DNA from: Octopus sinensis
Lineage: Eukaryota
Reading direction: 5' to 3'
DNA length: 64,000 nucleotides
Assembly (NCBI RefSeq): GCF_006345805.1
Contig: NC_043010.1
Coordinates: 67,208,001-67,272,000, forward strand
Each line of letters starts with the position of its first letter. Within the stretch, counting starts at the first letter, position 1. Shown one piece after another: positions 10,080-35,402 of this stretch. A program made the translations under genes and the position numbers. Below the pieces are notes generated by a model. The model was not told where the DNA came from. It saw nothing but the letters and a program-made list of their open reading frames with translations, and did no database searches.

Positions 10080-13000
10080 TCATAGGGGTTCCCAAAGGAA
10101 CCCCAACCAGATACGAAAGTTGGACCACCTATGCTCTAACAGCACTGGGAGGGTAAGTAAACCCAGTCTTTTCTTTTCTCTCAACTCTTTCCAGACAATG
10201 TGGTAATTAGAGTACGCTATATAAATGCACATGGTCTGGGGTCATTCTGAAAGCAAGGTCACTTGCTCAATGACCTCAGGTCACTAGCGATAGATGCAAC
10301 AGCTGTCAGTGAGACCAGGATTTCAAACATCTGCACAGTAGCCCCCGTTTTTGATGACTTTGTGATCTTTGCATCTCTTAGTCAACCTGAAACAGGAGGC
10401 AGGGCGGCAGCACTGTTTAGGAAATGCCTGGATCTCAAGGCACAGATGATCTTTCTAGATCCAGATGGTAAGTCAGAGGTTGTGAATGAGCAATAGTGAA
10501 GGTGGTACTTTTAAACTAGTCATAATGTATGCCCCAACTGAGGTAAGGCAGCCAGATTTTTTTATGTTTGGCAGTTTTTCTTGGGACATCTAGCTCTTTA
10601 GTGCTATGGGATGAATGGAATGCTATCTTGGATGCACACTTGGATTGTGTGGGGCTAACTGATAGAAGAGCCTCACAAACCTAAGTCACTTTGAACTGGC
10701 TAACAGATATCAACTGGATTTCCTGAATGCACCAATGTGAACATGGGCAAATAGCATTGGATCATCCAGATCATATCTTGGTAGAGTATTCTGTAGGCCA
10801 GTAGAGGAAACAGCATAGGTTGTCAACAATTTAAAGTTGTCAGCTACACAAACCACAAACTTATGATCTGTATAGTTGAACCACATAGGCTCTATAGGCA
10901 GGGCCCCAGATACTGGAAGCTGAATGCATCGTTCCTGATGCATCAAGTTTTCAGAAACCAATTTAGCAAGTTAGTCCTTTGGAAGTTGACCAGCACAATT
11001 GTCAACAACTGATGGTAGACCCAAAAGAGGCTAGGCATTAGGGTTTAGTAAAGAAATAGTGATAGAGAAGTCTAGTATAGAGGGCAACGTAGTTAGGAAG
11101 CTAGAAGAGGTACTTAGGAAAGGCAACACAAACAATGTGCTGGAAGTAAGATTGGTTCTTGACCAAATCTTCAATGTCAAGAACAAAAGTCATGCTGTCA
11201 GAACTAGGGTACATATTCTAAAACATGAGGAAATGATAGCTGTTCAATGGGCCTGGCTAGTAGAGGTGCAACATGGCAACAAAACTACAATTCGGTCTTT
11301 CATGTGATAGGATGGGCACTTGCTACTCGAATCCAAGCAAATGTGTGCTGTATTTCAGTAGCACTTTGCTGAACTGTACAGGGCACACAGTGGGTCAGAG
11401 ATGAGGGTGGATTTTACCTCCCGCTTCAATGGCCTGCTGTGGCTTTCTGCTGGGGATGCAGAGTTCTGTGAAATGCTGATAACAGCTTAAGATGTATGTG
11501 ATGTGAGGACTAGCTGCACAAGGGAGAAATCTCCGAGGTTGGATGGTTTACTCTCCAAGCTTTATCTTCCTACACCAGATTCATTCAGTGATCTCTTGGC
11601 AGATGTCTACTGCAACTGGCAGCTGACTGAAAGTATTCTCAGTCTTGTGAGCCAAGGTGTGGTAGTGCTGCTGAGAAACGACCCCAAAAATGGGTAACTA
11701 TTACAAGGATTTGACCCGGATGATAACCGAGAGGCTAGCACTTGTCGTGAATAGACTGGTCGGTGATGCACTATCCCAAACAGATCTATCTACGACCACC
11801 TCCACTCCACACAGTACATCATAAAGAGGGTAAGAAACCCAGCATGGGTGGAGGCCTGATCAACATGGATCAATCAAAAGCTTTTAACAGAGTTGACCAT
11901 CAATACTTGGCAGTGGGCTTCAGTCACATTTTCAGAGGTTGAACTACAGCAGTGCACAGTGACATCTGCTCAGTAGTCAAAGCAAATGGCCACATATCAG
12001 AATCATTTAACATCACATTCTGTCAGTCAAGGATGCCCTCTCTTTCCCCTTCTGGATGTGCTGGCTCTCAAGCCATTACTACAGAAGCTGGATGTTTCGA
12101 GGGGCATCTCATGTGAACTAGGATGCAAAAGTTTTGTGTCAGATTATGCAGAGAACATCACTATAATAATGTCAGACATCAAAGTGATCGGTACTACCCT
12201 GAAAGAGTACAAAGTAGTGGCAGGAGCAAAGACTAACCAAAAGTCAGTAGACCTGCAGCTCAACACCTGGAAAGGCAGGCCCATGTCACCCAACAGCATC
12301 ATAGGGCACTGGATGGAAGGACCAGTTAAATTGCTTGGGGCCTGGTTAGATCCAGGCCTCCAGGTAGACAAGAACTGGGGGAGGGTGAAGAGAAGGGTGG
12401 CCAGTCACACCCAGAAATGGGGTGAGAGGAAGCAGTCTCTGAAAGGTTGAGCAGAGGTAACAAATGCATGCACCACCTCCTTCATTTACTACTATCTAAC
12501 GATCGTCCTTTGCCCTGCTTTATTGCTGGTCAAGCTGGAGCACTTACTCTTCAGTTTCTCTAGAAAGAATGGTCCATTTGCTGTCAGCAACCACTAAGTG
12601 TAGGACTGGGGATGCTGTAGCTAATGATGCACAGACATTGGCTGGTCTTTTCCAGAGGACTTTAGTGCTGGGGCCCATGGATAATTACTAAAAATCCCTG
12701 GCCTGGTTTGTGCTACTGGGGATTTTGCCAGTTTGAGGCAAGCTCTACAGGCATGGAAGTGCTGTCTGAGATGCATACAGAGCAATGAAACTGTTCTGCA
12801 TGCACTTCATCCAATCTCAAGAGATAGCCAACTTGTAGAGCTTTATCAAACAGCTGTTGTCATATGGAGGGCAGATCTGATTATTAGCCGAGTCCATCAA
12901 GAGGATAGCCCCATTGCCTTCTTTTGGCCAGAAAGGGCACACAGTTTTTCTGTCTGGTGGCTAAGACAAAAGAGATAGTGTGGCAGACAAGGTCGAAAGG

Positions 13001-15356: not shown

Positions 15357-15395
<39 letters not shown>

Positions 15396-15722
15396 GTATG
15401 TATGTTGGAGTGTATGTATGTATGCATATATGAGAGTGAGTGAGCATGTGTGTGTATGTATGTATGTATGTATGTATGTATGTATGCGTGTGTAATTTGC
15501 CTCAGTTCGGATCACATTCAAAGTTTTATTCACAGTAGCATAGACTAGAACAAATTAATAAGTGTTTGTTGCTGATGTTATTGTCGATGTAGTTGAATGT
15601 GGAATATTTTGCTTTTGTTTTCTATATTTTTTTTTTTTTTAATTTTCATTTTATTTTTATGCTTTGTTTTGTTTCGTTTTTTTTGCTTTTTCTTCAATAT
15701 CTTCATCGCCTCCTCCACAGCT
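13700..15722 (-). other. Probable long 3'UTR of SNAP-25
   Basis: Directly downstream of the stop codon. No recognisable SINE or MITE for about 2 kb, unlike the rest of the window. AATAAA on the minus strand at 15525-15530 and at 14045-14050 (the latter followed by a U-rich stretch). The 3' end is not determinable. Confidence 0.5.
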
Positions 15723-16370
15723 TTACGCATCTTTGAGGAGTTTGGTTGCCCGCTTGTTAGCCTCGTCGATGCGAGTTTCGTTCGACTCGGCCTTCTGCTG
15801 GATTCGATCCACCTGCCTGTTTTGACCCCCAATCTCGTTGCCCATGTCAATGGCCATGTTCCTCAAATTTCCAATCATGCCACTGACCTCTTTGATGTTG
15901 GTCTCCATCTCCTCTTCCCTCGCATCACCGGTGATGCGAGTCACGTATCCAGAGCTCGGTCCACCCATGCCGTTTTGATCACCAACCACCATTCTTGGTC
16001 CGTTCGTGTTGGTAGGGCCGTCATCATCCTTTTTCCAGGTGTTTGCATAATCCCCACTCTTCTCAAACGACTTGCCCTTTTTCCAAGGCAGCACGCATAG
16101 ACCACAGCATTTCTCCATTCCTTCGAGATTTTTCTCAGCGTCTCGCATGTCCTGGTTGATCTGATCAAGACCTTCCTCTATACGATCCAACTGCTCTCCC
16201 TGTTCGTCGAGCATGACAAGGGTTCGAATACCAGCTTCTTTACTCTCTTCACACATCGTCAACATCCTCCGTGTTGACTCCAGCGAATCATCGGTAGTCT
16301 GATGAGATTTCTGCTGGATCTCCTCCAACTCAGTCTTCGGTGGTGGTGCCTCACCATTCATTTCAGCCAT
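15723..16370 (-). CDS. SNAP25: Synaptosomal-associated protein 25 (Qb+Qc SNARE), single coding exon, 215 aa
   Basis: [36 protein letters not shown] (Qb, zero-layer Q57); palmitoylation cluster CCGLC (C88, C89, C92); [41 protein letters not shown] (Qc, Q183). Start context CAAA-ATG; intact to TAA. Confidence 0.98.
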
Positions 16371-16420
16371 TTTGGATGTTTGTTAATCTGCAAATAATAA
16401 AAAAGAAAGAGGTAAGTATA
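16371..16420 (-). other. 3' splice site and 17-nt 5'UTR portion of the SNAP-25 coding exon
   Basis: Minus strand: TACTTAC (branch A at about -26), ctctttcttttttattattt, gcag|attaacaaacatccaaaATG. Exon starts at 16387. Confidence 0.75.
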
Positions 16421-16713
16421 CATACATACATACAGAGAGAGGGAGAGAGAGAGAGAGAGAGGATGAGAGAGCGTGTGTGTGTGTGGTGTGTGTGTGTGTG
16501 TGTGTGTGCGTGCGTGCGCATGTGTGTGTGTGTGTGTGGTCCTTAATGTTAAAAAACATCAGAAACATTAATTGTGACTTCGAAGTTTTGCCAAAAGCAG
16601 CTTTTTTTAATAAACAAGAAAGAAGTATAGAAACAGAGAGCGAGAGAGAGAGAGAGAGATGAGAGAGAGAGTGTGTGTGTGTGTGTGTGAGTGTGTGTGC
16701 GCATGTGCGTGTA

Positions 16714-18179
16714 TTGGGTTGGTAAGAAAGGCGGCGAGCTAGCAGAAACATTAGCACACCGGGCGAAATGCTTAGCGGTATTTCCTCTGCCATTACGTTC
16801 TGAGTTCAAATTCCGCCAAGGTCGACTTTGCCTTTCATCCTTTCGGGGTCGATAAATTAAGTACCAGTAACACACTAGGGTCAATGTAATCAACTTAATC
16901 CCTTTGTCTGCCTTTGTTTGTCCCCTCTATGTTTAGCCCTTCGTGGGCAATAAAGAAATAAGAAAGTAATTTCGGTTTTTTAGTGTGAAATAAAAGTCAG
17001 TTTTTATCTTACAAAAATGAACTTTAATCAATTATATATTTTGCTCAATGATCTTTTGCCATCTTTCTGACGACTTCATGGTTCTGCACTCATAGAACTT
17101 CTGGTCCTTATCAGCCAAAAACTAAAGCAAGGGCAATTTCAGGTCATCATCCCTATTAAAAGTTTTACTATACAAAGAATTTTGCAAACTTCAAAATAAA
17201 TGATAATCTGATGGTGCAAGGTCAGGGCTATGTGGTGGATGTGGCATCACTTCCCAACCAAGCTCCAAAAATTTTTCACAAGTTAGCAAAGACATGTATA
17301 GTCTAGTGTTTTCATGGTGGAACATGATTCCTTTACGATTTGCCAATTCTGGCTGTTTTTCTTTGATTGTTTTCCTCAGTTTCATTAGTTGTTGGCAGTA
17401 AACATCTGAATTGATCATTTGGTTCCTTGGAAGCAGCTCAAAATAGACAACACTTTTGTAATCCCACCAAATTGACAGCATGACCTTTTTTTGATGCAAT
17501 TCAGCTTTCAATGCAGTTTGTGCTGGTTCGTTATGCTTGGACCATGATCGTTTTTGATTGATGTTATTGTAGACAATCCATTCCTCATAACAAGTGATGA
17601 TTCATTTCAAAAATGGTTGATTTCATTGTGTTTGAGATGCATATCGTAAATATTGATTTGTTGTGTTAAATGAATCACTATTAAGCTTCTTAATGAGTTC
17701 AAGGGATTTTAAGTGATTTTCAATTATTGTGTGGGATACATATAACCTCTCTGACAATCAGATTCAATTATGGCTTTGATTTGGTCATCATCAACTTCAG
17801 TAGGTCAACTAGAATGTTGGTCGTCTTTGAGTGAAAAATCTCCAGAATGGGGTTTTTAAAATCATTTCTGACGTGTGTGTTCTGATAAGCAATCAACACC
17901 ATAGGCCTCACACATCTCAATGTGAGCCTCAGCAGCTTTCTTGCCTTTATGGAAATAGAAAAGCAAAATATGGCGAAAATGTCTGTTTTTGCACTCCATG
18001 TTAAAATTGACACTGAACTAACAACTGTAAACAAATTTATGAGCAATTTGCTTCTAAAGTAAGCTAAAAGTAATGGCTATCAAATGCCAAAAGGAAAAAA
18101 AAATCATAACATTGACAAAAGTCATTCAAAAACGTCATAACTGTTTGTGAAAAATGAAATAATTTTCTTGCCAACCCAA
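16714..18179 (-). mobile_element. Mariner DNA transposon, full length, transposase disrupted
   Basis: TIRs TA|TTGGGTTGGTAAGAAAG and ttttcttgccaacccaa. N-terminus MECKNRHFRHILLFYFHKGKKAAEA from 17999. C-terminal KVMLSIWWDYK..FELL..HPPHSPDLAPSDYHLF (17191-17511). Stops and frameshifts lie between. Confidence 0.93.
16731..16959 (+). mobile_element. SINE A inserted into the mariner TIR
   Basis: Splits the TIR; aagaaag is present on both sides (16724-16730 and 16960-16966). Confidence 0.9.
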
Positions 18180-18324
18180 CATACACACATATATCATCAT
18201 CATCATCATTTAACATCCATTTTCCATGCTAGCATGGGTTGGACGGTTCGACCAGGGTCTGGGAAGCCAGGAGGCTGCACCAGGCACATATATGTGTGTG
18301 TGTGTGTGTTTATGTATGTACCTT

Positions 18325-18725
18325 TTTTTATTCATCTTTACTTGTTTCAGTCATTAGACTGTGGCCATGCTGGAGCTGTGCCTGGAAGAATTTTAGTTGA
18401 ATGACTCAAACCCAGTACTTATTTTCCTTTAAAGCCTGGTACTTATTCTATCGGTTTCTTTTGCCGAACTGCTAAGTTACAGGGGACGTAAACACACCAA
18501 CACCAGTTGTGAAGCAGTGGGTGGGGGGATAAGCAAAAAACACATGCACACACACACACACACACATACATATATATGGTGAACTGCTTTCTGTTTCTGT
18601 CAACCAAATCCACTCACAAGGCTTTGATCAACCCAAGGCTGTAGTAGAAGACTCTTGCCCAAGGTGTCCCACAGTGGGACTGAACTTGGAACAGTGTGGT
18701 TGGGAAGCAAGCTTCTTACCACACA
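18325..18725 (-). mobile_element. SINE B
   Basis: Same body as 3740-4143, more diverged. Confidence 0.8.
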
Positions 18726-18729
18726 GTCA

Positions 18730-19060
18730 AAAGATAGAGGAAGAGAACTAAGAAGATGGTCAAGACACAGCAAAGGCAAGGTGGGGGTGAGCCTGTCACT
18801 TAACCGAAGCAGAGAGAACAACAGGTGGGCTAAAATAACATAGAGAGGAACTGAGAGGATTCCATTAGCAGGACTTCATGAGAAGGGTTCAAAGGAGGAT
18901 CAGACACAAAAAGAAATGGGGAGATGATGTTGCATAAGAGATGAGGGTGATAAGAGAAGATACAACAATGGCTTGGACTAGAATTACAACCAACAGGAAG
19001 AGGTGGAAGAAGGACACATATAGAAGTGGACCGCTACATCCTAAGAGAAGGAAAAACACA
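18730..19060 (+). mobile_element. RTE-like LINE 3' fragment
   Basis: Broken frames NNRWAKIT, KKKWGDDVA and WTRITTNRKRWKK resemble the RTE ORF C-terminus. Confidence 0.45.
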
Positions 19061-19396
19061 TATGCGTGGGAAAATGTGTGTGTTGGTGTGTGCGTGTGTG
19101 TGTGTTGGCATGTGTGTGTGTGTATGTGTTGGTGCATTATATATTACACTTATATAATGCACCAGTGGCGAGCTGGCAGAAATGTTAGCATGCCAGGTGC
19201 AATGCTTAGCGGTATTTCGTCTGTCTTTAAGTTCTGAGTTCAAATTCCACCGAGGTTGACTTTGCATTTCATTCTTTCAGGGTCGATGAATTAAGTAGCA
19301 GTTGTGCACTAAGGTCGATCTAATTAACTGGCTCCCTCCCCCAAAATTTCAGGCTTTGTGTCTAGTGTAGAAAAGTATATATTACATATATATGTA

Positions 19397-19431
<35 letters not shown>

Positions 19432-20269
19432 GTACATGTGACTGTGTGTGTACATCATCATCATCATCTTTAATCTCTATTTTCTATTCTGGCATGGGTT
19501 GGACAGTTTCAGAAGATCCAGCAAGCCAAAGAGCTACAGTGAGTTCTACTGTCAGCTTTGGCATGGTTTCTGTGACTTGGAGCCTTTCCAAATGCCAACC
19601 AGATTACAGGGTGAACAGTGGGTGCTTTTTTTGTGCTACCAGCACACATATACATACATACACATACACACACACACATATATATATATACACACACAAA
19701 CACATATTTATACACACTCACATACATATATATCATCATCATCATCATCGTTTAACGTCCGCTTTCCATGCTAGCATGGGTTGGACGATTTGACTGAGGT
19801 CTGGCAAACCAGATGGCTGCACCAGACCCCAATCTGATCCGGCAGAGTTTCTACGGCTGGATGCCAATCACATATATCCCCAAATCTATAGAGTTGTAAA
19901 GTAAACTTGACATGTGTGTATGTATGTGTGTACTTGTGTCTCCTAGTCTTGATATTGCGTGCTGATTGTGAAGAGATATCACCAACAGCGTCGCTTGTTT
20001 GGAGTCTTCCATGAAAACATGTTCAGACTAGTGGTAAACATTACCTAGCTTGAAAGCAGATGAGGGTTATTGACAGGAAAAGCATCAGGCTGTAAAGAAT
20101 TTCTGCCTCAACGAATTCTATGCAGTCATGAAAATATAGTCATTAAAACGATGATGTATGTATGCAATGCATGTAGGTATGTATGTATGTATGTCAGTAT
20201 GTAATTGTATGTAATGTATATGTAATGTGTGGATGTAAGTATGTCTGTCACACACACATACATCATCAT

Positions 20270-20595
20270 CATCATCATGATCATCGTTAAACAACCGCTT
20301 TCCATGCTAGCATGAGTTGGACGATTTTGACTGAGGGCTGGCGAACCAGATGGCTGCACCAGGCTCAGTCTGGCAGAGTTTCTACAGCTGGATGCCCTTC
20401 CTAACACCAACCACTCTGAGAGTGAAGTGGGTGCTTTTTACGTGCCACTGGCACAGGGGCTAGTCAGGCGGTACTGGCAATGACCTCGCTCGAATCTTTT
20501 TACACATGCCACCGGCACAGGTGCCAGTAAGGCGACGTTGGTAACGATCACGCTCAAATGGTGCCCTTTTATGTGCCACCGGCATGGAAGCCAGT
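20270..20595 (-). mobile_element. Retroposon family C with 5' tandem units
   Basis: ctggatgcccttcctaacaccaaccact core followed by degenerate gtgccaccggcaca units. Confidence 0.8.
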
Positions 20596-20898
20596 AAATA
20601 CATCTATTCATATATATGGTGAGCTACCAAAATGCATTCACAAGGCATTGGTCAGCTCATGGCAATAGTAGAAGATAAAACATTTGCCTAAGATGCTGCA
20701 TGGTAGGGCTGAACCCAAAACCATTTGGTTGTAAAGCAAACTTCTTAACCACACAGCCATGCCCTAATTGTAAATGGATGATGGAAGCGAGCAGATATGC
20801 AGTTTCCGAAGAGAGAAGAATGCAAATGGAGTGTGGGCAAAATGTCAGTGAAGCACCATAAATATAAGAAAGAGAAGTAAAGGAGTAAAGAATCTCTT

Positions 20899-21533
20899 TG
20901 GTCCATGAATGACCATGGGGTTGCACTTAGAAAGTTCCCCTCTGAGACACAAGTCCAGGTAAAGTTGTTTATGGAAGGCCAGCAGTCACCCAGGCATACC
21001 GACCCTCCCTTCTCCATGCCATTATATGTACATGGGGTAAAGGGTAAGGCCCCCTTCGGTCATGAATGACTATGGGATTGCACCTAGAAAGTTCCCCTCT
21101 GAGACACAAGTCCAGGCAAGGTTGTTTATGGGAGACCAGCAGTCACCCATGCATACTGGCCCTCCCTTCTCCATGCCATTATATGTACATGGGGTAAAGG
21201 ATAAGGCCCCCTTCAGTCATGAATGACTATGAGATTGCTCCTAAAAAGTTCCCCTCTGAGACACAAGTCCAGGCAAGGTTGTTTATGGGAGACCAGCAGT
21301 CACCCATGCATACTGGCCCTCCCTTCTCCATGCCACCAGTGTTATCCAAGGGAAAGGCAAAGGGGCCGATTCAGCTTGGCACCAGTGATGTCGCAACTCA
21401 TTCCTACAGCTGAGTGAACTGGAGCAATGTGAAATGAAGCGTCTTGCTCAAAAACACAACACATAACCCGGTCCGAGAATTGGACTCACTACCTCATGAT
21501 TGCGAGACCAAGGCTCTAACTACTGAGTCATGC
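20899..21533 (-). mobile_element. SINE D whose 3' part is triplicated in 157-bp tandem units
   Basis: catgaatgac at 20904, 21061 and 21218. tRNA-like head at about 21450-21533. Confidence 0.85.
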
Positions 21534-21699
21534 AAAGTAAACAGAAGTAAATAAATGCTGGCCAGCATGTGTGAGTACTCCAGCATGGGCTTGAGATGTG
21601 GCACAACTGTTTTGATGCTAAACTTTTGGCATCACTGATTTGATAATCTCTCTCTCTCTCTGTTTATTTCTTTATCTCTATGAGAAGGAAAGTGCTTAT

Positions 21700-22075
21700 G
21701 TCGTTTTATCTTTTATTTGTTTCAGTCATTGAATAGCGGCCATGCAGGGGCACTGCCCTCAAGGGCTTAGTTTAATAAAATGATACCACTACTTATTTGT
21801 TAAACCTGGTACTTATTCTATTGATCTTCTTTGTCAGACTGCTAAGTAAAAAGAATTGAAAAAAAACATTGCCGGTTCTGAAGCAGTGGTGGCTGACAAA
21901 CACATACACATATATAATGGGATTCTTTCAGTTTCCATCAATTAAATCCAGTCACAAGGCTTGGATCAGCCCAGGGGTATAGGAGAAGACACTTGCTCAA
22001 AGGGCTGCACAGTGGGACTGAACTCACAAGCAAGTGATTGGGAAGAAAACATCATACCAGATAGCCACACCTAAC
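21700..22075 (-). mobile_element. SINE B, decayed
   Basis: tttcagtcatt..ggtacttattcta..cacaaggctttgg..cagtgggactgaac. Confidence 0.7.
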
Positions 22076-22789
22076 CATGTTCAATTAATAAATTAATTAT
22101 GTCTCTCTCTGTCTCTCTCCATCCATCCAGCCAGCCAGCTATCTATCTACATTTGTGTGTGTGTGGTGTGTGTGTGCGTGCGTGCACACGCATGTGTTTG
22201 CCACCAACATCAAAGAGTACTATCGCCAAAACAGGCTGGAAGTCCAGTGGACTGTTCCAGATCCTCATTGGCCCAACAGAGTTGTAACCGATCATCCCAT
22301 TGTATGTGTGAGAATGGAAGAGCCAAACAGTGTACATGTATTGTTGCAGTGAAAGATAAGAGGAGAAAGAACGAGAGGAAGAATATGTTGCTATTTCGTT
22401 TTTGCACTTGGTTTACGAAACTCTTGATGTGAAACTCGTGTGTTGACACTTATTCTGTTCAAGCTTGGAGGGTCATTATCTCAATAATAAAACACATGCA
22501 CCGATTCTGTTTCACTTCTTTATTTGTCAATTAACTAAATAAATTAATCAATTGGTTGTGTTAATTCTAGAGGGAGAGAACATCCCTTGAAGAAAAATCA
22601 ATTGTTTTTTTTCACAAAGAAGTCAAGTGGACATTGAGCCTGATACTGAAATAGACACGAGACAGAAAGATAATGTTGAGAGCAACTCTAAGTATTGAAA
22701 TGCCAAGTAACAGGTTCAATAGTCCCAAGGGTACTGTGTCATTTATTAAGCAATTTTCTTTCATTTCTTTATTGTTTAACCCTTTCATA

Positions 22790-23228
22790 AAAAGCACCAT
22801 CCGAACGTGGCCGATGCCAGCACTGCCCCGACTGGCTTCTGTGCCGGTGGCACATAAAAAGCACCATCCGAACGTGGCCGATGCCAGCGCTGCCCCGACT
22901 GGCTTCTGTGCCGGTGGCACATAAAAAGCACCATCCGAACGTTGCCAGCGCCGCCTTGGCTGGCTTCCGTGCTGCTGGCACGTTAAAAGCTCCAACCGAT
23001 CGTGGACGATGCCGGACCCCCCCCCCCACCGGCACCTGTGCAGGGGGAACGTAAAAAGCACACACTACACTCGCGGAGTGGTTGGTGTTAGGAAGGGCAT
23101 CCAGCCATAGAAACTCTGCCAGATCAGACTGGAGCCTGGAGCAGCCCCTGGCTTCCCAGACCCCGGTCGAACCGTCCAACCCGTGCTAGCGCGGAAAACG
23201 GACGTTTAAACGATGATGATGATGATGT
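22790..23228 (+). mobile_element. Retroposon family C with about 4 tandem 62-67-bp 5' units
   Basis: aaaagcaccatccgaacgtggccgatgccagc...gtgccggtggcacata repeated; (GAT)n tail. Confidence 0.85.
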
Positions 23229-23444
23229 TACTGTATTTATTTTGAGATGCTCTGTGTTTCTTTCAATTACTTTAAATATAACAAAGAACTTAGTAAAATA
23301 ACTTAGTTATCATTAAGCTGGTGTTAGGAACATAAATTGTAACTAAAATTTGGTGGAAGATTTTAATTCAGAACTTTTGAAAACAAGACATTTGTACGAC
23401 AGAGCCAGAGGTGGTTTCAGCGGAGTTAGTAACAAAAGGGTTAA
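23228..23444. mobile_element. MITE-A, opposite orientation
   Basis: Reverse complement of 3258-3485; ends gtaacaaaaggg|ttaa. Confidence 0.8.
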
Positions 23445-23811
23445 TAAAGAAGTTTGCACTATAGATACCAGGCAGTCTCAAGTAGGTTACTATGAAAACT
23501 GTTAAGAGGTTAAGGAATATCATGTCACACATCTCAGGCATATTTCAGAGGGCCAGTGGTATTATATCATGTATCAAGCAATAGGTTTAGGCTGTCTGGA
23601 AATGTTATGTCATATATCAAACAAATGTCCTGTTAATAGTTTGGCATTTAAACTGGCCATATCTGTCCAAAATATTCTACCTGTTATATCATCAAACTGG
23701 CCAGATCTGGCCTCACACTTATTCTAATAATGAACAATCACATCATCAAAATCTCGAAGCCATGAGGTAATGCATAACAAATTCAAATTAATGTGAATAA
23801 ATAAGCATTAC

Positions 23812-24045
23812 CTATTTCTTTACTACCCACAAGGGGCTAAACATGGAGAGGACAAACAAGGACAGACAGAGGGATTAAGTCGATTATATCGACCCCAGTG
23901 CGTAACTGGTACTTATTTAATCGACCCCGGAAGGATGAAAGGCAAAGTCGACCTCGGTGGAATTTGAACTCAGAACGTAGCGACAGACGAAATGCTGCTA
24001 AGTACTTAGCCCGGCGTGCTAACAGTTCTGCCAGCTCGCCGCCTT
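23812..24045 (-). mobile_element. Young SINE A inserted in MITE-B
   Basis: aataaataagcattac is duplicated on both sides. Confidence 0.85.
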
Positions 24046-25136
24046 CCGAATAAATAAATAAGCATTACCTTTAACTATTTCGTTAAGCATTACCTTTAAC
24101 ATAGTAATCTGAATGTTACAGTATTTAATATCAAACCTCAAACCTTCTAGTCTACAGTCTGTCTCTCACATACACAAAACGTTGCAAAGTTGGGCATTTT
24201 GTTCATGACTTGGGAGGGAGGGATTTTGAATTGTGCAAAGACACTACACAACAACCCCTTTTAATAAATAAATAAATAAATAAATAAATGGATTGTTTTT
24301 TCCAAATGGAGTTGGAACAGGCATTATAGGTTGAGGGAAAAAAATATGATGTATGTTATTAGATGAATAGCCTATCAGATGAGTAAGTTAAAGGGTGATG
24401 TAAAAGGTAGGCTTATGGCCTGTCAATTGAGAAGTCCCCTTCTGTTTTTTGTTTCTTTTTTTTTTTTTGAGGCAGGTCCATTAACCATTCCCAGGGCTGT
24501 GTGACATTTTTGCTGAGTAGGTTAGAACAGTATGAAATGAAGTAAGTTGCTCAAGAACACAATGCATCACCTGGAATTGAAACCACAATCTTACAACCAT
24601 TAAGTCATATGGCTCCTCAAAAGAAAGGGTTTCCTGCCGCAAACCCACACCAGTTTCCAAGCAAGGGAATGTCCCCAGACATGCTTTCCATGTAAGACTG
24701 TAAACAAATATTGCTTGTATGACAATATGACAATGATGTCAAAACAGGGGTAAACACAAACATGCATATATATATATAATATATATATTATATATATTAT
24801 ATATATATATATATATATAAATCGTCGTTATCATCATCATCATCGTTAATGTCTGTCTTCCGTGCGTACATGAGTAGGATGGGTGACAGGAGCTGGCCAG
24901 GTAGAAAACTACCCTCAGCTACTCTGTGTGTTTGTGTGTGTGTCTGTGATGGGATTATACACACACAAACATGCAATGGGCTTCAAGTTTCCATCAATCA
25001 AATCCATTCTCAAGGCTTCGGTTGGCCTGGGGCTAAAGTAGAAGGTGCAACACAATGAGACTGAATCCAAGACCACATAGTTGGGAAGCAAGCACCTTAA
25101 CCACACAGCCACAGCTGTGCCAAAAAAAAAAGATAT

Positions 25137-25178
<42 letters not shown>

Positions 25179-25559
25179 CACACACACATACATACATACA
25201 TACATACATACATAAATTATACATATCAAGGTTTTGTGAATGTGTTTTTGTCTGTTTTTTTTCTCTCTCCCTCCCATATCAGAATCTCTGAAAAAATTTT
25301 TGGACATACCACCTGTTTCACTGAACCATAAGATAAAATAAATAAATTAACACAAAATCGAATTTATTGTTTACGTAGACAAATTCCGTGGTCACAGATG
25401 AATCTCGTGTCCTGGAATCAGTGTCAAGCCAATAAATCCATTTTCAGTTCAAACACTTCTTTTATTGACATGGTGTCAATAAAAGAAGTGTTAAATATTT
25501 GCTAATGACGTTGCGGGTGACAGCTGCGTTGGAACAGAAGAATAGAGCGAAGCCTTATA

Positions 25560-26330
25560 CGACACCTATACACTGCAACACAGGACTATTAACATACCCC
25601 ACACCACCCTACAGTCATGTACTATAGAGTATACTGTTATACCATACACCAGGCTGTCATACAGTACTATAACACATTCCACACGGTCATACAGTGCCAT
25701 GCTACCATACAGTACTGTACCATAAACTGCACTACCATACAGTTCTGTAGCATATACCACACTGTACTATACTATGCACCGTACCTATTTCTTTATTACC
25801 CACAAGGGGACAAACAAGAACGAACATAGGTATTAAGGCGATTACATCGACCCCCAGTGCGTAACTGGTACTTAATTTATCGACCCCGAAAGGATGAAAG
25901 GCAAAATCGACCTTGGCGGAATTTGAACTCAGAACGTGACGACAGACGAAATACTGCTAAGCATTTCGCCCGGCGTGCTAACAGTTCTGCCAGCTCGCCA
26001 CCTGTATACTATGCACCGTACAACCATACAATACTATAGCATATACTATGCTACACTACAATACAAGAGCATATACTGCTGTATTATACAATACTATAGC
26101 ATCTACTATACTACAATACAATTCTACAATATTACAGCATGTACTACTCTGTCATACAGTACTATAGCATACACTACTCTACCATACAATACCAAACAGC
26201 ATACTATACTATGCACCACACTATTATATGGTACTATAACATACTCTACACCGTTGTAAAATACTATACCTTGCACCACAATACTATATGGTACCGTACC
26301 ATGCAGTAAATTATTGTAGTAAACTTCCTC
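25560..26330. repeat. Degenerate 5-mer (tacta/tacca) satellite with local 30-bp period, split by SINE A at 25785-26004
   Basis: 17-bp TSD tatactatgcaccgtac at 25768-25784 and 26005-26021. tacaatactatagcat units recur at a 30-bp period around 26030-26120. Confidence 0.8.
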
Positions 26331-26489
26331 AGAAGTGCTTTCCACTGAAGCTACCAATTCCATTCTCCTCCTCATCACCAGCCCTTCATCACCTACCCAT
26401 CACAAACTAACCAATCACAGTCCAACCAAGAAAACTGACCACACTGGCCAAATTTAGGATGAGGGGCCCATAAGTATGTTTTACAAATA

Positions 26490-26880
26490 TACCATGCCGG
26501 CAGCACATAAAAAGCACCAACCGATCGTGGCCGTTGCCAGCCTCCCCTGGCACCTGAGCCGGTGGCACGTAAAAAGCACCAACCGATCGTGGCCGTTGCC
26601 AGCCTCCCCTGGCACCTGAGCCGGTGGCACGTAAAAAGCACCAACCGATCGTGGCCGTTGCCAGCCTCCCCTGGCACCTGTGCCGGGGCATGTAAAAAGC
26701 ACCCACTACACTCACAGAGTGGTTGGTGTTAGTAAGGGCATCCAGCTGTAGAAACACTGCCAGATCAGACTGGTGCCTGGTGCAGCCTTCTGGTTCGCCA
26801 GTCCTCAGTCAAATCGTCCAACCCATGCCAGCATGAAAAGCGGACATTAAACGATGATGATGATGATGATGATGATGATG
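26490..26880 (+). mobile_element. Retroposon family C with three near-identical 62-bp 5' units
   Basis: ccgatcgtggccgttgccagcctcccctggcacctgagccggtggcacgtaaaaagcaccaa x3. Confidence 0.85.
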
Positions 26881-27148
26881 AATCTGGCAAAATCGTTAGC
26901 TCGTTGGACAAAATGCTTAACGACATATTTTCCGAGCTTAATTTTGCCTTTCATCTCCTTCTGGGGGTCGATAAAATACAGTACTAGTCACATACTGGAA
27001 GCAATGTTATCGACTTGCCCCACTTCCTCTTGTAAAGATTGCTGCCCTTGTAGCAAAATTTTAAACCATCATTAATGGTGGTGCCACAGCTTGGCCACAA
27101 CCACTGGCTAGAACACATAAAGGAATGCCATACGCACACTCACATATA

Positions 27149-27594
27149 CAAGGGGATGCTGAAAATTTCCTGGCTTTAAGAGTATTGCTAAAAGGCCTGG
27201 TTGGAGGCTAACTTTCTAAGTTCTTTTACAGGGATTAGAAAAACTGGAGGACACCAAATTACTGGAAGGAGAATATGTTGAATAAAATCATAATTAACTG
27301 CAAGCTGGCAGAAACGTTAGCACACCAGGTGAAATGCAGAGCGGTATTTCATCTGCTGCAACGTTCTGAGTTCAAATTCCGCCAAGGTCGACTTTGCCTT
27401 TCATCCTTTTGGGGTCGATAAATTAAGTACCAGTTATGCACTGGGGTCGATATAATCGACTTAATCCGTTTGTCTGTCCTTGTTTGTTCCCTCTATGTTC
27501 AGCCCTTTGTGGGCAATAAAGAAATCAAATCATAATTAACTGATCCTCCTTTATTTTCTCTTACCTAAAACCAGGGATTTTTGGTAACCCCTTG
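27149..27594. mobile_element. Mariner-derived MITE containing a SINE A insertion (27301-27526, +)
   Basis: TA|caaggggatgctgaaaatttcctggc ... ccagggatttttggtaaccccttg|TA. SINE TSD aaatcataattaactg at 27285-27300 and 27527-27542. Confidence 0.8.
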
Positions 27595-27845
27595 TATACA
27601 AAAGTACAGGTAACAGACTAAATCTGGCACCCTGTTTCACACCACCTCCTGACTCGTGAGTGTCCCCTTCGGCAAAGTCTGCTCCGTTTGAAGTATTTGT
27701 ACCAGGTCAGTGACCCGAGGAAAACTTCCTCCCTCTCTTCTACCACTCTCAGAGCTTGTAAAGGGATTTTGCTTGTTGCCCTTTCTCCTCTAAGCCATAG
27801 AAAATATTAAAAGTACAAACTTACATAAGCATATATACATATACA

Positions 27846-27878
<33 letters not shown>

Positions 27879-27948
27879 CACCAGGTGGTGCTATTAAGTT
27901 AGACATGGCCTGGGCCAATAATGGCCGAAACCTATCAAAGTATCAAAG

Positions 27949-28010
<62 letters not shown>

Positions 28011-28899
28011 TGTGTGTGTGTGTGAATGGTGACATCTGTTACAAGTACACACACATGTATGCATGGATATATACATATGTATACATACATATATGCATAT
28101 ATACGCATGCATATATTCATATGTATGCATACATACATACACACACACATATATATACATACCTATGCATTCGTATATATGTACTAGTTCCAGCATGGAA
28201 GGCGGATGTTAAATGATGATGATACGATAATGCATACACACACAAAGATACATAAATACACACACACATATATATATAGGTTTGGTAGAACAAGCAGGAT
28301 AAATAGAACTCCATACATGAGTATATATATATATATATATTATATTTAATCGGCAGAACTGACCAGATAACTTGGCTCAGGGGCTTCCATATAAATCATT
28401 TGCCCAAGGTACAGTGAAGTCTGAATAGTCCAAGAATTACATAATCACATTGACATCATATCATCATTGCCACTCTCTATCTTCCCTATACTTAAACCCT
28501 CCCCCAAAGCTTCATGTGGTTGCCTGAGCTGCTAGAAGTAGCAGCCAAATCTTCCTCAGGGATACATCGGATAATGTATAGATAGTAACCAAGTATAGAT
28601 TCTCTTTTTTTCTTTTTTCAGCTATTGGACTATGGCCATGCTGTAGCACCACCTCGAAGGGTTTAGTTGAACATGTGGAACCCAGCACAGCCTGGTATTT
28701 ATTCTATCATTCTCTTTTTGTGAAACTGCTGAGTTACAAGGACATAAACAAACCAGTGCTGGTTGTCAAGAGCTGGGGGAGGGGGCAAACACCCAGACAC
28801 ACACACAAACATATATACGCAGTAGGCTTTCAGTTTCCTCTACCAAATTTATTCACAAAGCTTTGGTTGGCCTATGGCTATGGTTGTATCAGGACGAAC

Positions 28900-29060
28900 A
28901 CCTCACTAGGACAATAACCCCCCCCCATAGGACAATTCCCCGCCGACAATAACAATTCCCTAGGACAATTACACCCCTTGGTTAATTACCTCCTCTCCAA
29001 TATATTAAGAAGTTTTAAGTCATCATCTGTTGTCCTCAGGTGTAATTGTCCATGCGGTGG
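28900..29060. mobile_element. Small foldback/MITE with subterminal ggacaatt repeats
   Basis: Four (a)ggacaa(t) units on the left and inverted ttgtcc/tgtcct units on the right. Confidence 0.45.
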
Positions 29061-29218
29061 GGGTAAATGTCCTAGACTCGCTATGGATGAAGACACCAGC
29101 CCAAGCTTCCACACAGTGGGATTGAACCCAGCAACATGTGGTTGAGAAGTAAACTTCTTGTCACACATCCATCCATACCTGTTTGTAAAAAAAAAAAAAC
29201 CCTTTGATCATGATCAGC

Positions 29219-29698
29219 TTAACCCTTTCATTACTAACCCGGGTGAAACCGCCCCTGGCTCTGTAGTACAAACATCTTGTTTTCAAAGTTTTGAATTAAA
29301 ATCTTCCACCAAACCTTAGTCACAATTTATGCTCCTAACACTAGCTGAATGACAACTAAGTTATTTTACTAAATTTTTTGTTATATTTAAAATTAATTGA
29401 AAGAAACACAGAGCATCTCAAAATAAATACAGTAACGAAAGAGTTAAAATATATAATAGAGAAATAATTCTTAACCCTTTTGATCCCAACCTGGCTGAAA
29501 CTGGTCTGGCTCTGAGTACAAATGTCTTGTTTTCATAAGTTTTGAATTAAAATCTTCGACCAAATCTTAGTCACAATTTATGTTCCTAACACTAACTGAA
29601 TGATAACTAAGTTATTTTACTAAATTCTTTGTTATATTTAAAATTAATTAAAAGAAACACAAAGTATCTCAAAATAAATACGGTAATGAAAGGGTTAA
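29219..29698. mobile_element. Tandem dimer of MITE-A
   Basis: Two TTAA-bounded units separated by the 23-bp spacer aatatataatagagaaataattc (29448-29470). Confidence 0.85.
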
Positions 29699-30129
29699 AC
29701 AAGCATGCATACTAGAGGTTAGAACATGATCATTTGGCCCAGAAACCCAAAACTAAGACATCAGTACAACAATTCAGCTCATATTAGTTAAACCATGACC
29801 AGCCCAAAGGTTCTACACACATGCACACAACCACCACAATTACCAAAAGCCTTAACCATTTGAGCCTGTAACACCAGTTTACTGGTGGATGGTTTATTTT
29901 TTCCTATACCGTAGTACCACTCTACCGGTGGAGTGTATCTGGAAGCTAGATGTATGGTCAAATGAGGTTCAGGAGGTCAGGGCTTAAAGGGTTAATCCTT
30001 TAGCATTCAAACCGGTCATATCCAGTCAAAATATTCTACCTGTTTTATGTTCAAGCCAGCCAGATGCAGCCTCTCACACCCAGCCTACAATGTCCTTCTA
30101 AAAATAAGCAATCTCATTGTGAAAATTTA

Positions 30130-30430
30130 CTGACCCTGAAAGGATGAAAGGCAAAGCTGACCTCTGCGGAATTTGAACTCAGAACTTAGAGACAGGCAGA
30201 TGAAATACCTATTTCTTTACTACCCACAAGGGGCTAAACACAGAGAGGACAAACAAGGACAGACAAACGAATTAAGCTGATTATATCAAGCCCAGTGCGT
30301 AACTGGTACTTATTTAATCGACCCCGAAAGGATGAAAGGCAAAGTCGACCTCAGCGGAATTTGAACTCAGAACGTAGCGGCAGACGAAATACCACTAAGC
30401 ATTTTGCCCAGCATGCTAATGATTCTGTCA
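30130..30430 (-). mobile_element. SINE A copy joined to a head-truncated SINE A
   Basis: Junction cagatgaaatac|ctatttctttactacccacaag at about 30205. Confidence 0.8.
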
Positions 30431-30434
30431 GTTT

Positions 30435-30700
30435 GATGTAATCTTCACATGGAGAATACCAAACATTATTTACATTATTTACAATTGACAGATATTTGTC
30501 CTCATTTTGTTTGTTGTTAACACGACTTTTCGGCTGATATACCCTCCAGCCTTCAACAGGTGTCTTGGGGAAATTTCAAACCTGGGTTCTCATTCCTAAG
30601 GTATTTTTTTGATATCATTATTATTATTATTATTCAGGTCACTGCCTGGAATTGACCTCAGAATCTTGGGGTTAGTAGCCCATGTTCTTAACCACTACTC
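30435..30700 (-). mobile_element. Retroposon family E (tRNA-like head, hammerhead-like tail), degenerate
   Basis: Reverse complement gacac ctgttga a ggctg gagggtatat cagcc gaaa agtc gtgtt. Confidence 0.75.
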
Positions 30701-31602
30701 CTAAGGTAACCTAAAGCAAAACTTACTCAGCCACTTGTTGATCCCTCTAAATCCTTATTTCACCAATATCAAGTATACTTCTATGTAATCAAATTGACCT
30801 GCTGGAAATAGCAGCCAAAGCTTCTTCTCCAAGCACTTTGCTTATCGTTTTAAGGAATGTTACATACTGAGTCCTGTGTATACCTAAAAATACAAGGTGA
30901 GATGTTTCTGGAATGTTTTTGATCATAGAACTGCTCAATCAGAGTTGACCTGGGGTTAAAATTTTAAAGACAGCTCTTCGGATATGAGTTTATAAAGGAG
31001 GGAACCCCTATGTAGTTGAAAACCTTTTGTCTGCCTCTCGTGTGGTCAGGATTGTGTGTGTGTGTATGTGTGTATACATGTGTGTGTGATTGTGTGTATA
31101 CATGTGTGTGTGAATGTGTGTATGCATGTGTGTGTGTATCATGTATATGCATATGTGTGCATGCATGTGTGTGTATGTATGTGTGTGTATGTATGGGTGT
31201 GTGTGTATGGGTGTGCGTGTCTATGTATACTCTTGTTTTGATGTCATGTGATGTCAATGAGCATCATCATCATCATCATACAGGCAAGGTTACTTGTTTC
31301 CAATCTGCCATGAAAAATATGTCTGGTAATAGGGGTGGAGGGATATTACATTTCTGGGAAACAGGTAAAGGTTGGTGACAGGAAAAGCATCTGACCACAG
31401 AGAATCTGCCTCAACTGATTCTGTCTGATCCATGCAAGCAAGGAAAAGTTCATGTCACATGATGACAATATGTTTACATATGGTATGCTGACGTCACCGT
31501 AACTTAGTGGTTCAGCAAAAGAGACCAACAGATTAAGAGCAGGGTCGATTCATTTGACTAAAATGCCTCAAGGTGGTGCTCCACCATGGCCACAGTCTAA
31601 TG

Positions 31603-32199
31603 CAATGTTTCTCAACCATTTTTTCCAGTGCCCCACTTTAAAATAACAAATAACCTGGTGCCTATCAATATAGAAACATGATTTTTAATTCAATTACCTG
31701 GCTGATGGATACCTCAACTCATTTAGGGAGAACCCTGTACCTCATGCATACAGCACAGATCCTTGAGTTGAGGGAGGAGACAATCTCGTTAACTTCAGTC
31801 ATGAATTGCTACGTTTTGTAATTTCAAGTCGGTTTCTCTTGGCTTCCAGGAAATTGTCAACCTCACTGAATCCACATTTGACCAAATAAGATGAAGGAAA
31901 ATGGATCAATAATTCTCTTGGACAATAGATATTGATATAGAGGAACAAACGTCTAACAAATGCCGATACCTCACTTGGTACGCTGATTGGTTGTAGCTCC
32001 GTCGATTCCCATGATTTAAGTATAGATATTGCATGGTGATGTTTCTTTTCCATTTCAGTGTCCAAAGATGGGCTTAGGGTCAACAAGTGTGTGCTTAAGT
32101 CACTTACAAAAATTTTACACAGCCCACATTAACACGCGCCCCACCCCAATTTTCCCACGCCCCACCGGTGGGGCATATGCTCCACATTGGGAAACACTG
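31603..32199 (-). mobile_element. hAT (Buster/Charlie-type) internally deleted DNA transposon
   Basis: TIRs caatgtttctcaac and ttgggaaacactg. Perfect 8-bp TSD GTCTAATG (31595-31602, 32200-32207) with central TA. Remnant LLIHFPSSYLVKCGFSEVDNFLEAKRNRLEIT matches the hAT C-terminal dimerisation region. Confidence 0.9.
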
Positions 32200-32214
32200 G
32201 TCTAATGATTGAAG

Positions 32215-32465
32215 CCATTTGACAAAAACCATTTGATTAAAACTCCTCAAGGAGATGCCCCAGCATGGCCACAGTTTAATGACTGAAACCATTTTGATTA
32301 AAATTCCTCCAAGTGGTGCCCCAGCATGGCCACAGTTTAATGACTGAAACCATTTGACTAAAATTCCTCAATGTGGTGCCCCAGCATGGCCACAGTTTAA
32401 TGAGTGAAACCATTTAACTAAAATTCCTCAACGTGGTGCCCCTGCATGGCCACAGTCTGACTGAA
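32215..32465 (+). repeat. About 60-bp tandem repeat x4 derived from the SINE B tail
   Basis: accatttgactaaaattcctcaa..gtggtgccccagcatggccacagtttaatgactgaa repeated. Confidence 0.85.
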
Positions 32466-32694
32466 ACAAGTAAAAGTCATAAATGATGAAGAGGAGAGGA
32501 GGGAGGTTGAAGAGAGAAGAAACTGAGTGCAGTGTTTGATTGATACTTTATCAAAACCCCAAAGAGATGAAAGGCAAAGTTGACCTTGGCAGGGTTTGAA
32601 CTCAAAAGAAGAAACTGGGACAAATACTGCAAAGTGTCCTATTTTCTGATGCTTGAGGGATTCAGCCAGTTTCCTGTCTTTTTAAATAAATATG

Positions 32695-33028
32695 TTACAG
32701 TGGTTGTGTGATAAGAAGTTTGCTTCCCAACCACATGGTTCCGGGTTCAGTCCCACTGCATGGCACCTTGAGTAAGTGTCTTCTACTATAGCCTCAGGAA
32801 GATTAAAGCCTTGTGAGTGGATTTGGTAGACAGAGATTGAAGGAAATCCATTGTGTGTGTGTGTGTGGTGCTTGAATGGCTACGTGATAAGTAGCTTACT
32901 TCCCAACTACATGGTTCCAGGTTCAGTCCCACTGCGTGGCACCTTGGGCAAGTGTCTTCTACTATAGCCTCGGGCCGACCAAAACCTTGTGAGTGGATTT
33001 CGTAGACAGAAACTGAAAGAAGCCCATC

Positions 33029-33060
<32 letters not shown>

Positions 33061-33270
33061 ACATGTTTGTGTGTCTGTGTTTGTTCTCCCAGCATCGCTT
33101 GACAACCGATGCTGGTGTGTTTACGTCCCAGTAACTTAGCGGTTCGGCAAAAGAGACCAACAGAATAAATACTAGGCTTACAAAGAATAAGTCCTGGGGT
33201 CAATTTGCTCGACTAAAGGCGGTGCTCCAGCCTGGTCACAGTCAAATGACTGAAACAAGTAAAAGAGTAT
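32695..33270 (+). mobile_element. SINE B (head-only copy followed by a full copy)
   Basis: ccacatggttcc(g/a)ggttcagtcccactgc appears at about 32730 and 32910. Confidence 0.8.
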
Positions 33271-33914
33271 ACATGTGGAGAGAGACACAGAGAGAGGGGA
33301 GGAGGAGGAGAGAATGAGAGTGACATCAAAACGTTTCACGTCAAATGGGTCAATGCCAATTCAGCAAGACCAAATTGTCCCATTCTTGTGTAGCAGAGTT
33401 CTACGTCCCAGTTATGAAAGTGGGACATTAATCATCATCATCATCATCAACAACAACATCACTTAATATCCGTTTTCCATGCTGATATGGGTTGGACAGG
33501 TCATCATCATCATCATCATCATTGTTCGACCGTGGTCGAGACAATGGAATTTACTATGCTACACCAGACTTCACGGTCCATTATAGCATTAGATGGACAG
33601 GTCAACAGGAGGAGCTGGCAAGTCAGAAAACCGCACCAAGTTCTAGTGTCAGCTTTGGCATGGTTTCTGCAGCTGGACGCCCTTCCTAAGCCAATCACTC
33701 TACAGAGCTTACTGGGGGCTTTGCATGTAGTACCAGCACAGGTGCTTTTTACATGGTACTGGTACAGGTGCTCTTTATGTGACACCAGCACTGGTGCTTT
33801 TTCAATGAAAACTACAAATATATCACATGGAGTACAAGGGAGGGTCAGCAACAGTTTATAAGCGCAAGTATTTTCAGGCCCCGAGGAAGAAACCGTGAAT
33901 TTGAGATTGAGAAC

Positions 33915-34305
33915 CTCTTTTACTCTTTTACTTGTTTCAGTCATTTGACTGTGGCCATGCTGGAGCACCGCCTTTAGTCGAGCAAATCGACCACAGGACT
34001 TATTCTTTGTAAGCCTAGTACTTATTCTATCGGTCTCTTTTGCCAAACCGCTAAGTTACGGGGACGTAAACACACCAGCATCAGTTGTCAAGCTATGTTG
34101 GGGGGACAAACACAGACACACAAACATATACACACATATACATATATATATACGACGGGCTTCTTTCAGTTTCCATCTGTCAAATCCACTCACAAGGCTT
34201 TGGTCGGCCCGAGGCTATAGTACTTGCCCAAGGTGCCACGCAGTGGGACTGAACCTCAAACCATGTGGTTGGTAAGCAAGCTACTTACCACACAGCCACT
34301 CCTAT
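33915..34305 (-). mobile_element. SINE B, full length
   Basis: Same body as 3740-4143. Confidence 0.85.
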
Positions 34306-34489
34306 GCCTATTAGTTGGCAGTCCTTCATTATTGGTACACGTCATTCACCTGCTCAATCTTCCTTCATAATACAGATAAAGAGGTGAGGCTGAATGGCAT
34401 CGTCTCCTCACACCGACATTCAGCAGACCAAAATCGAAGGAGAGCCCATTATTTAATACAACCTTCCATTTTCAAGACAATGGGGGTTA

Positions 34490-34965
34490 CCCTTTAGCAT
34501 TCAAACCAGCCATATCCGGCCAAATTATTTGACTTGTTTTATGTTCAAACTGGCCATATCTGGTCTCTCACACCTACCCCACTATGTCATTCTAAAAAAT
34601 GAATGCTCACATCATCAAAATCTCAACGCTACAAGATAGTGCATGATTAATTCAAAACGAACTCGTCTGGCCCCCGTGTCGGTGGCATGTAAAAAGCACC
34701 ATCCGATCGTGGCCGTTTGCCAGCCTCATCTGGCACCTGTGCAGGTGGCACATAAAAAGCACCCACTACACTCTCGGAGTGGTTGGCGTTAGGAAGGGCA
34801 TCCAGCTGTAGAAACACTGCCAGGTCAGACTGGGCCTGGCGCAGCCTTCTGGCTTCCCAAACCCCAGTTGAACCGTCCAACCCATGCTAGCATGGAAAGC
34901 GGACGTTAAACGATGATGATGATGATACATTTGATAGAAAAATCTGAATGCTACAGAGTTAAGAG
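34490..34965. mobile_element. MITE-B split by a family C retroposon (34660-34925, +)
   Basis: cctttagcattcaaaccagcc... resumes after the (gat)n tail as acatttgatagaaaaatctgaatgctacagag|ttaa. Confidence 0.75.
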
Positions 34966-35402
34966 AGGTGTGGCTGCTATTTCTAGCAAGTAAACCATGA
35001 GTAGGTGGTTGTTGTTATGTTATCAGTGTATGGTTACGTTGCAAGGTCCTTAAACACAGCGTGACCTATTGTTGGTTAATGCTGTTTTTGGTCTCACATC
35101 GTTCGTGCTTAAAGAGATTGTTATGTTGTAGATGTCTTTCTTTGATAAGTAGTGTTTGTAGTGAGTGTATCTGCTTTTGAAAGAAATTAGGTTATTGTGC
35201 CTCCACTGGAAGATGTTTTCAAGGTCTCTCTATACACGGAGGCAGTGAGTATCTAGCATGAGCTGTCTGTGGTGGTGTGGGGGGGGGACCTGGTGAATGA
35301 AGGATGGGTGTTATCTACGAAGGCCTGCGAGTGAGAGGAAAGATAAAGCAAGGACAAGATGGCTTTTATGTATGGAAAGACATCTTGATACCGTTTTTCT
35401 AA

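Follow-up and report, generated by a model that had tools for sequence, protein, structure and literature searches.

The SNAP-25 gene of Octopus sinensis carries its entire coding sequence in one uninterrupted exon, although SNAP-25, one of the three core SNAREs of neurotransmitter release, is encoded by several coding exons in a bivalve and in vertebrates. It is highly probable that this functional gene, which is probably the only neuronal SNAP-25 gene of the animal, lost its coding introns in one RNA-mediated step before octopods and decapodiforms separated, and that isoforms arising by exon choice have thereby become impossible.

A Complete SNAP-25 in a Single Coding Exon

The window, i.e., the whole 64-kb stretch of DNA analyzed (O. 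sinensis assembly GCA_006345805.1, chromosome record CM016872.1), contains on its minus strand at 15723..16370 an open reading frame of 648 nt that runs from ATG to TAA, comprises 215 codons plus the stop codon in a single exon and exhibits neither internal stops nor frameshifts. Its GC content amounts to 50.5%, compared with 38% for the window. Residues 95-151 of the predicted protein of 215 amino acids match Pfam family PF00835 (SNAP-25) with 63.3 bits at a cutoff of 25 (E=2.2e-17), and residues 9-212 align with the mammalian SNAP-25 chains of solved SNARE/NSF complexes (E=7.9e-70). The separate N- and C-motif chains of 1SFC, 1KIL and 1L4A are also matched, as are two squid SNAP-25 fragments of PDB 1L4A. 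Both SNARE motifs are present, with the zero-layer glutamine contexts DEQGEQL and QNRQ preserved, and a CCGLC sequence in the linker aligns with the mammalian cysteine cluster, a putative palmitoylation site. Vertebrate SNAP25 is an orthologous protein that is matched over its full length and shares both motifs and the cysteine cluster with octopus SNAP-25. A hydrophobic stretch indicative of a transmembrane segment was not seen in the 215 residues.

By its sequence, the open reading frame is assigned to the SNAP-25 family, i.e., the Qbc t-SNAREs of synaptic vesicle fusion. The best homologue among the best 120 of 2,044 protein matches was found with E=1.4e-133, and because of this value, together with an exon-1 match (E=1.6e-21, see below) that ends exactly on GT, a chance match is excluded. 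The description of the locus by the sequence-only reading as a complete 215-residue SNAP-25 frame in one exon, without disablements, is thus confirmed by the intact frame, the Pfam domain and the full-length match.

Exon-Intron Structure and Splice Sites

The structure of the gene was derived from a spliced transcript of a related octopod (contig L014; 1,039 nt, assembled from run SRR3401912, 86% nucleotide identity to the window). Nucleotides 1-66 of this transcript match positions 51033..50967 of the window on the same strand as the gene (92.5% identity, E=1.6e-21), and nucleotides 59-1039 match positions 16388..15376. The gene resides on the minus strand, spans at least 15376..51033 and consists of two exons. 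Exon 1 is short and non-coding (5'UTR, 50974..51033; a minimum extent, as the contig may be 5'-incomplete) and is followed by a 34.6-kb GT-AG intron within the 5'UTR (16388..50973, 34,586 nt). Exon 2 combines a 17-nt leader, the entire 648-nt coding sequence and the 3'UTR, the latter extending at least over 15376..15722 on the minus strand, where the transcript is collinear with the window down to 15376.

At the 3' end of exon 1 the window reads CCGAAGG/gtaaac with the donor gt at 50973-50972, and the acceptor ag is located at 16389-16388 (tttgcag), exon 2 beginning at 16387. The arrangement tttttattatttgcag/ATTAACAAACATCCAAA-ATG places the acceptor exactly 17 nt ahead of the start codon in each of three octopod genomes, and the transcript is spliced precisely at this position, just as had been proposed from the sequence of the window. 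The polypyrimidine tract and AG acceptor, ctctttcttttttattatttgcag (16388..16412, minus strand), are kept in Octopus bimaculoides and in genomic contigs of another octopod. The leader ATTAACAAACATCCAAA (16371..16387, minus strand) is identical in the three octopod genomes and differs by one mismatch in the transcript; A occupies position -3 and G position +4 around the ATG.

Intron 1 harbors SINE-like repeats, a mariner fragment and a minisatellite. The SINE-like repeat of about 200 nt has 31 matches in the window, 20 of them in intron 1 (e.g., 16729-16926); neither a tRNA nor a known RNA family was recognized in it by ARAGORN and Rfam, and Rfam and tRNA scans of the whole window likewise remained without a match. 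The mariner-type transposase fragment (17191-17511, minus strand, PF01359, E=5.5e-23) lies inside the intron less than 1 kb upstream of the acceptor. The minisatellite at 45383-45917 is built from 14.9 copies of a 36-nt unit with 91% matches and gives rise to spurious open reading frames of 128-151 amino acids. Two further tandem repeats, 51287-51499 and 51879-52109, precede exon 1 by 250-1,100 nt, where the promoter is presumed to lie; they are pyrimidine-rich on the gene strand and have units of 49/100 nt and 35-38 nt, respectively.

Distribution Among Cephalopods

The uninterrupted coding sequence recurs in all cephalopod genes for which a genomic locus was inspected. In O. bimaculoides (XP_014778478.1), the 648 coding bases are contiguous, and genomic contigs of another octopod, originating from three runs, align collinearly with the window through the acceptor and into the 3' flank and contain a contiguous coding sequence as well. 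The annotated protein of Argonauta hians falls into the same 90% cluster as octopus SNAP-25. Two SNAP-25 genes are present in the cuttlefish Sepia pharaonis, arranged in tandem about 40 kb apart on scaffold CAHIKZ030004991.1 (at ~765 kb, L006, and ~805 kb, L009), both with contiguous coding sequences. Squid SNAP-25 from Doryteuthis pealeii (AAM18191, the protein in 1L4A) resides in the same protein clusters as the other coleoid copies and, being about 90% identical to the octopus protein, belongs to the same coleoid gene family.

As the intronless coding sequence is common to octopods and cuttlefish, it predates the octopod-decapod split. Judged from the sequences compared, the intron loss is old and shared by these two groups, and the uninterrupted SNAP-25 coding sequence is probably a feature of all coleoids. 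The structure described from the octopus sequence is therefore real and old and, by virtue of its coleoid-wide occurrence, less singular than implied. The same data bear on the idea that cDNA contamination or a mis-join in the assembly mimics an intronless gene. Two independent chromosome-level octopus assemblies, the cuttlefish assembly and the short genomic contigs that three runs yielded for another octopod all exhibit the same structure with collinear non-coding flanks. The artefact reading is left with a negligible probability and is effectively refuted by the independent assemblies.

Decapodiforms differ from octopus, for which one gene was found, by the possession of two tandem paralogues, A and B, that were seen directly in Sepia and differ mainly in the N-terminus and the linker. 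The proportion of synonymous differences (pS) between the Sepia paralogues is 0.42, far below the 0.85-0.90 (saturated) calculated for either of them versus octopus, and therefore a duplication within decapodiforms, or gene conversion, is indicated. A transcript of Sepia paralogue A, which starts with a sequencing adapter, follows the genome without interruption for about 520 nt of 5'UTR, and paralogue A therefore lacks a 5'UTR intron in this region.

Some database entries from this group required separate inspection. A Sepia gene model of 449 amino acids (CAE1318054.1) was considered as a possible multi-exon gene and ruled out, as it represents a single-exon frame with a frameshift near the 3' end and low-complexity read-through. 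Proteins P0003 and P0134 (267 and 274 amino acids), which read through the stop codon (KLLKN-W-GKKK), were considered as cases of stop-codon editing; this was rejected because the gene caller had read TGA as Trp, contig L013 containing a plain TGA. Contig L007 is chimeric, with bacterial 16S rRNA joined to paralogue B of Sepia SNAP-25.

Multi-Exon SNAP-25 Genes in Other Animals

A single-exon coding sequence is not a general property of molluscan SNAP-25. Transcripts of the clam Ruditapes philippinarum aligned to the genome (GCA_026571515.2) yielded coding exons of 90, 42, 49, 118 and 138 nt, i.e., at least five, with more to be placed past the scaffold end, as opposed to the contiguous coding sequences of Sepia and the octopods. 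The coding introns are of the GT-AG type and measure 11.0, 8.8, 3.6 and 3.8 kb, such that at least four introns interrupt the first 146 codons. Like octopus, the clam has an intron in the 5'UTR; its acceptor is found at -165, and the upstream exon is more than 9.8 kb away. Bivalve and gastropod SNAP-25 proteins share 69-76% identity with that of octopus, and up to eight SNAP-25 isoforms are annotated by NCBI in other bivalves and gastropods. For Pomacea, the look-up yielded transcripts but not a genomic locus.

The clam locus (L018) furthermore contains, at 25864-25944, 27974-28060 and 37259-37390, additional tandem copies of two coding exons, which have diverged to 38-49% identity with the exons used. 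This arrangement suggests that the duplicated exons serve as mutually exclusive alternatives, in regions of the protein other than that specified by vertebrate exon 5. The coding sequence in the clam is thus split and provided with tandem alternative exons, whereas that of octopus is a single exon.

The clam exons of 42, 49 and 118 nt presumably equal exons 3-5 of vertebrate SNAP25 in size, and on this premise the respective introns would be ancestral to bilaterians. In vertebrate SNAP25, too, the first exon is non-coding and an intron follows it, an organization shared with octopus SNAP-25. In Drosophila, Snap24 is a SNAP-25 paralogue said to lack coding introns, beside which the multi-exon Snap25 persists. 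The situation in coleoids is different, since the intronless form is apparently the main or only SNAP-25 and has been duplicated in decapodiforms. In vertebrates, the coding sequence is distributed over several exons and isoforms arise by the choice between exons 5a and 5b (PMC2581893), a choice for which the octopus coding sequence, being without introns, offers no equivalent.

A side observation concerns a non-coleoid lophotrochozoan (GCA_013332715.1, JAAUYG010090905.1), in which a SNAP-25 of 214 amino acids with 75% identity to the octopus protein is encoded by one uninterrupted frame (L026, 1595-2239). A candidate acceptor precedes the ATG by about 120 nt, and a run of nine A starts 13 nt past the stop codon. 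This gene may represent an independent loss of coding introns.

Selection and Copy Number

Octopus SNAP-25 is under strong purifying selection. Among four octopods, represented by the window, O. bimaculoides (L005), a genomic contig (L002) and the transcript L014, dN/dS ranges from 0.009 to 0.039 at dS values of 0.20-0.41. In a TBLASTN search of the 64-kb window with eight molluscan and cephalopod proteins and E values up to 10, only the one open reading frame was recovered and no further SNAP-25 exons. Among the best 120 of 2,044 protein matches, the annotated SNAP-25 proteins of O. bimaculoides, O. sinensis and Argonauta group together in a single cluster, and further cephalopod SNAP-25 clusters at 289 bits or above are absent.

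These data speak against the view that a separate multi-exon SNAP-25 does the neuronal work and that the copy described here is an accessory or decaying retrocopy. Such a view could appeal to the extent of the copy search, which spans the 64-kb window and the best 120 of 2,044 protein matches. It is opposed not only by the dN/dS values and by the single protein cluster but also by the spliced transcript, by the conservation of the 3'UTR and the splice site and by orthologues of the same structure across coleoids. In addition, the classical squid SNAP-25 cDNA and the protein of the crystal structure are of the type encoded by the intronless gene. A silent or secondary copy is accordingly very improbable; the locus is the functional neuronal SNAP-25 gene of octopus, and it is probably the only one.

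The 3'UTR and Its A-Rich Tract

The 3'UTR contains an AATAAA signal at 15530..15525 within a nearly invariant block, gtgaataaaactttgaatgtgatccgaactgaggcaaatt, in which three of 40 positions vary in an alignment of four octopods. Closer to the stop codon, a tract at ~15605..15695 (minus strand), corresponding to about +28 to +118 after the stop, consists of 65-78% A, with a run of 14 A at 15627..15640, compared with a background of 30% A on the whole minus strand of the window. Equivalent tracts are present in O. bimaculoides, two other octopods and both Sepia paralogues. In all coleoid copies, the tract is 65-80% A over about 100 nt and starts about 5-30 nt past the stop codon; in Sepia paralogue A, a run of 15-18 A begins only 3 nt after the stop. 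Such a tract is absent from the 3'UTRs of Ruditapes and Pomacea and from that of the P0006 transcript (12-45% A).

The sequence-only reading had stated that a poly(A) scar is missing right after the stop codon. This is correct for the first 27 nt, which are not A-rich, and it is true only in the narrowest sense because the region from +28 to +118 is 65-78% A, a property recurring in every coleoid copy. As far as base composition can tell, the tract is possibly the relic of a poly(A) tail; located inside the present 3'UTR, it could instead be a functional element of the latter.

Downstream of the gene, a 4.1-kb block (9848-13994) is 92.9% identical to O. bimaculoides, compared with 84-91% for blocks within the intron. 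It includes an open reading frame (11986..12450) without a Pfam match and may represent a longer 3'UTR, conserved non-coding DNA or an old insertion shared by the two species.

Origin of the Intronless Coding Sequence

An RNA intermediate is indicated because all coding introns are gone at once, and an essential neuronal gene has thus probably been rebuilt via RNA. The ancestral coding introns, which are still present in the clam, would all have been removed in a single step by way of a reverse-transcribed mRNA. This step would have preceded the octopod/decapodiform split, and it would have been followed by maintained strong purifying selection and by tandem duplication in the cuttlefish lineage. 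From the window alone, either an old retrocopy or wholesale intron loss had been proposed as the source of a functional gene. The functional state, the age and an RNA-mediated loss are in line with our data, and the probability is divided between two routes.

The slightly favored route, with close to an even chance of being correct, is that a processed mRNA was retroposed and the multi-exon parent subsequently lost, i.e., retrogene replacement. The coding sequence is uninterrupted where the Ruditapes relative has at least four introns, and the octopus gene combines a spliced transcript with purifying selection. The A-rich tract just past the stop codon in every coleoid copy, a feature not shared by the 3'UTRs of the multi-exon relatives, and the transcript of Sepia paralogue A, unspliced over about 520 nt of 5'UTR, also argue for this route. 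Target-site duplications are not expected to outlast the time since the octopod-decapod split. Under retrogene replacement, the distal 5' exon and the intron of the octopus gene would have been recruited afterwards.

Alternatively, in the coleoid stem, the original locus may have been converted through recombination with a 5'-incomplete SNAP-25 cDNA, with retention of promoter, exon 1 and 5'UTR intron. This intron loss in situ, for which we see a considerable probability that falls short of even, is compatible with the overall interpretation and competes only with retroposition. The survival of the 5'-most intron alone is the 3'-biased pattern expected from it, though not exclusive to it, and a large 5'UTR intron (>9.8 kb) also exists in Ruditapes, as does a non-coding first exon in vertebrate SNAP25. 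On the other hand, the intron is located at -17 in octopus versus -165 in the clam, the UTRs of the two cannot be aligned, and cuttlefish paralogue A is devoid of a 5'UTR intron within about 520 nt. The earlier proposal that the 5'UTR intron of octopus was "retained" is unproven on these grounds. Moreover, recombination at the original locus does not predict an A-rich tract past the stop codon, and octopus exon 1 and its upstream region exhibit no homology with the upstream regions of Sepia apart from low-complexity matches. With regard to synteny, six-frame open reading frames were compared between the window, the two Sepia loci, the clam locus and L026; SNAP-25 is all that they have in common, and other genuine genes are not visible in the 64-kb window.

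Neither retroposition nor recombination of a cDNA would constitute a new kind of mechanism, as RNA-mediated intron loss and retrogene replacement are already known. The respective gene models are already part of the public annotation. Retrogene replacement and "orphan" retrogenes have been described for amphioxus SYCP1 (PMC5803294) and in human (PMC3548309). As is proposed for octopus, a single-exon coding sequence there fulfils an essential function that formerly belonged to a multi-exon ancestor, and it is under purifying selection, and octopus SNAP-25 may resemble these genes also in having recruited a 5' exon and a promoter. It differs from them in that the A-rich tract is suggestive only, and a new location with target-site duplications and the loss of the parent are putative. 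Our literature searches found no paper remarking on the structure of the intronless cephalopod SNAP-25 and nothing relevant on Snap24 as a retrogene, and the case appears to be unremarked in the searchable literature.

Isoform Diversity and RNA Editing

Because the coding sequence is without introns, isoforms generated by exon choice are impossible in octopus; octopus and cuttlefish, and probably all coleoids, are unable to diversify SNAP-25 in this way. In mice, loss of one SNAP-25 isoform causes developmental and neuronal defects (PMC2581893). Two sources of protein diversity are then left to octopus, namely RNA editing, as documented in squid, and gene duplication. The finding is of moderate importance for cephalopod neurobiology and, being confined to one gene, provides a clean case in which the exchange of splicing for RNA editing or duplicated genes in cephalopods can be tested.

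Editing of SNAP-25 is already published for squid, where the transcript of this same coleoid gene family carries seven A-to-I recoding sites (Alon et al., 2015, eLife, PMC4384741, supplementary file 1J). It is referred to as "heavily edited," with cumulative recoding values of 4.4 (giant fiber lobe), 3.4, 1.9, 3.6 and 3.8 in five neural tissues (PMC4384741). The suggestion that diversity originates from editing rather than from splicing is supported for squid by the recoding there and may hold for octopus, and it has to be widened insofar as decapodiforms also possess two tandem paralogues. Variants within the protein clusters, inspected for traces of editing, comprise only single substitutions (e.g., I187V and T197S) that are indistinguishable from polymorphism.

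A more far-reaching scenario would combine these elements: at the base of the coleoids, an alternatively spliced multi-exon SNAP-25 would have been replaced outright by a processed copy, and the lost isoforms would have been compensated by A-to-I recoding and by the tandem duplication in decapodiforms. We regard this full sequence of replacement and compensation as rather unlikely; if true, it would provide a concrete and datable example from the cephalopod nervous system in which diversification moved from splicing to editing.
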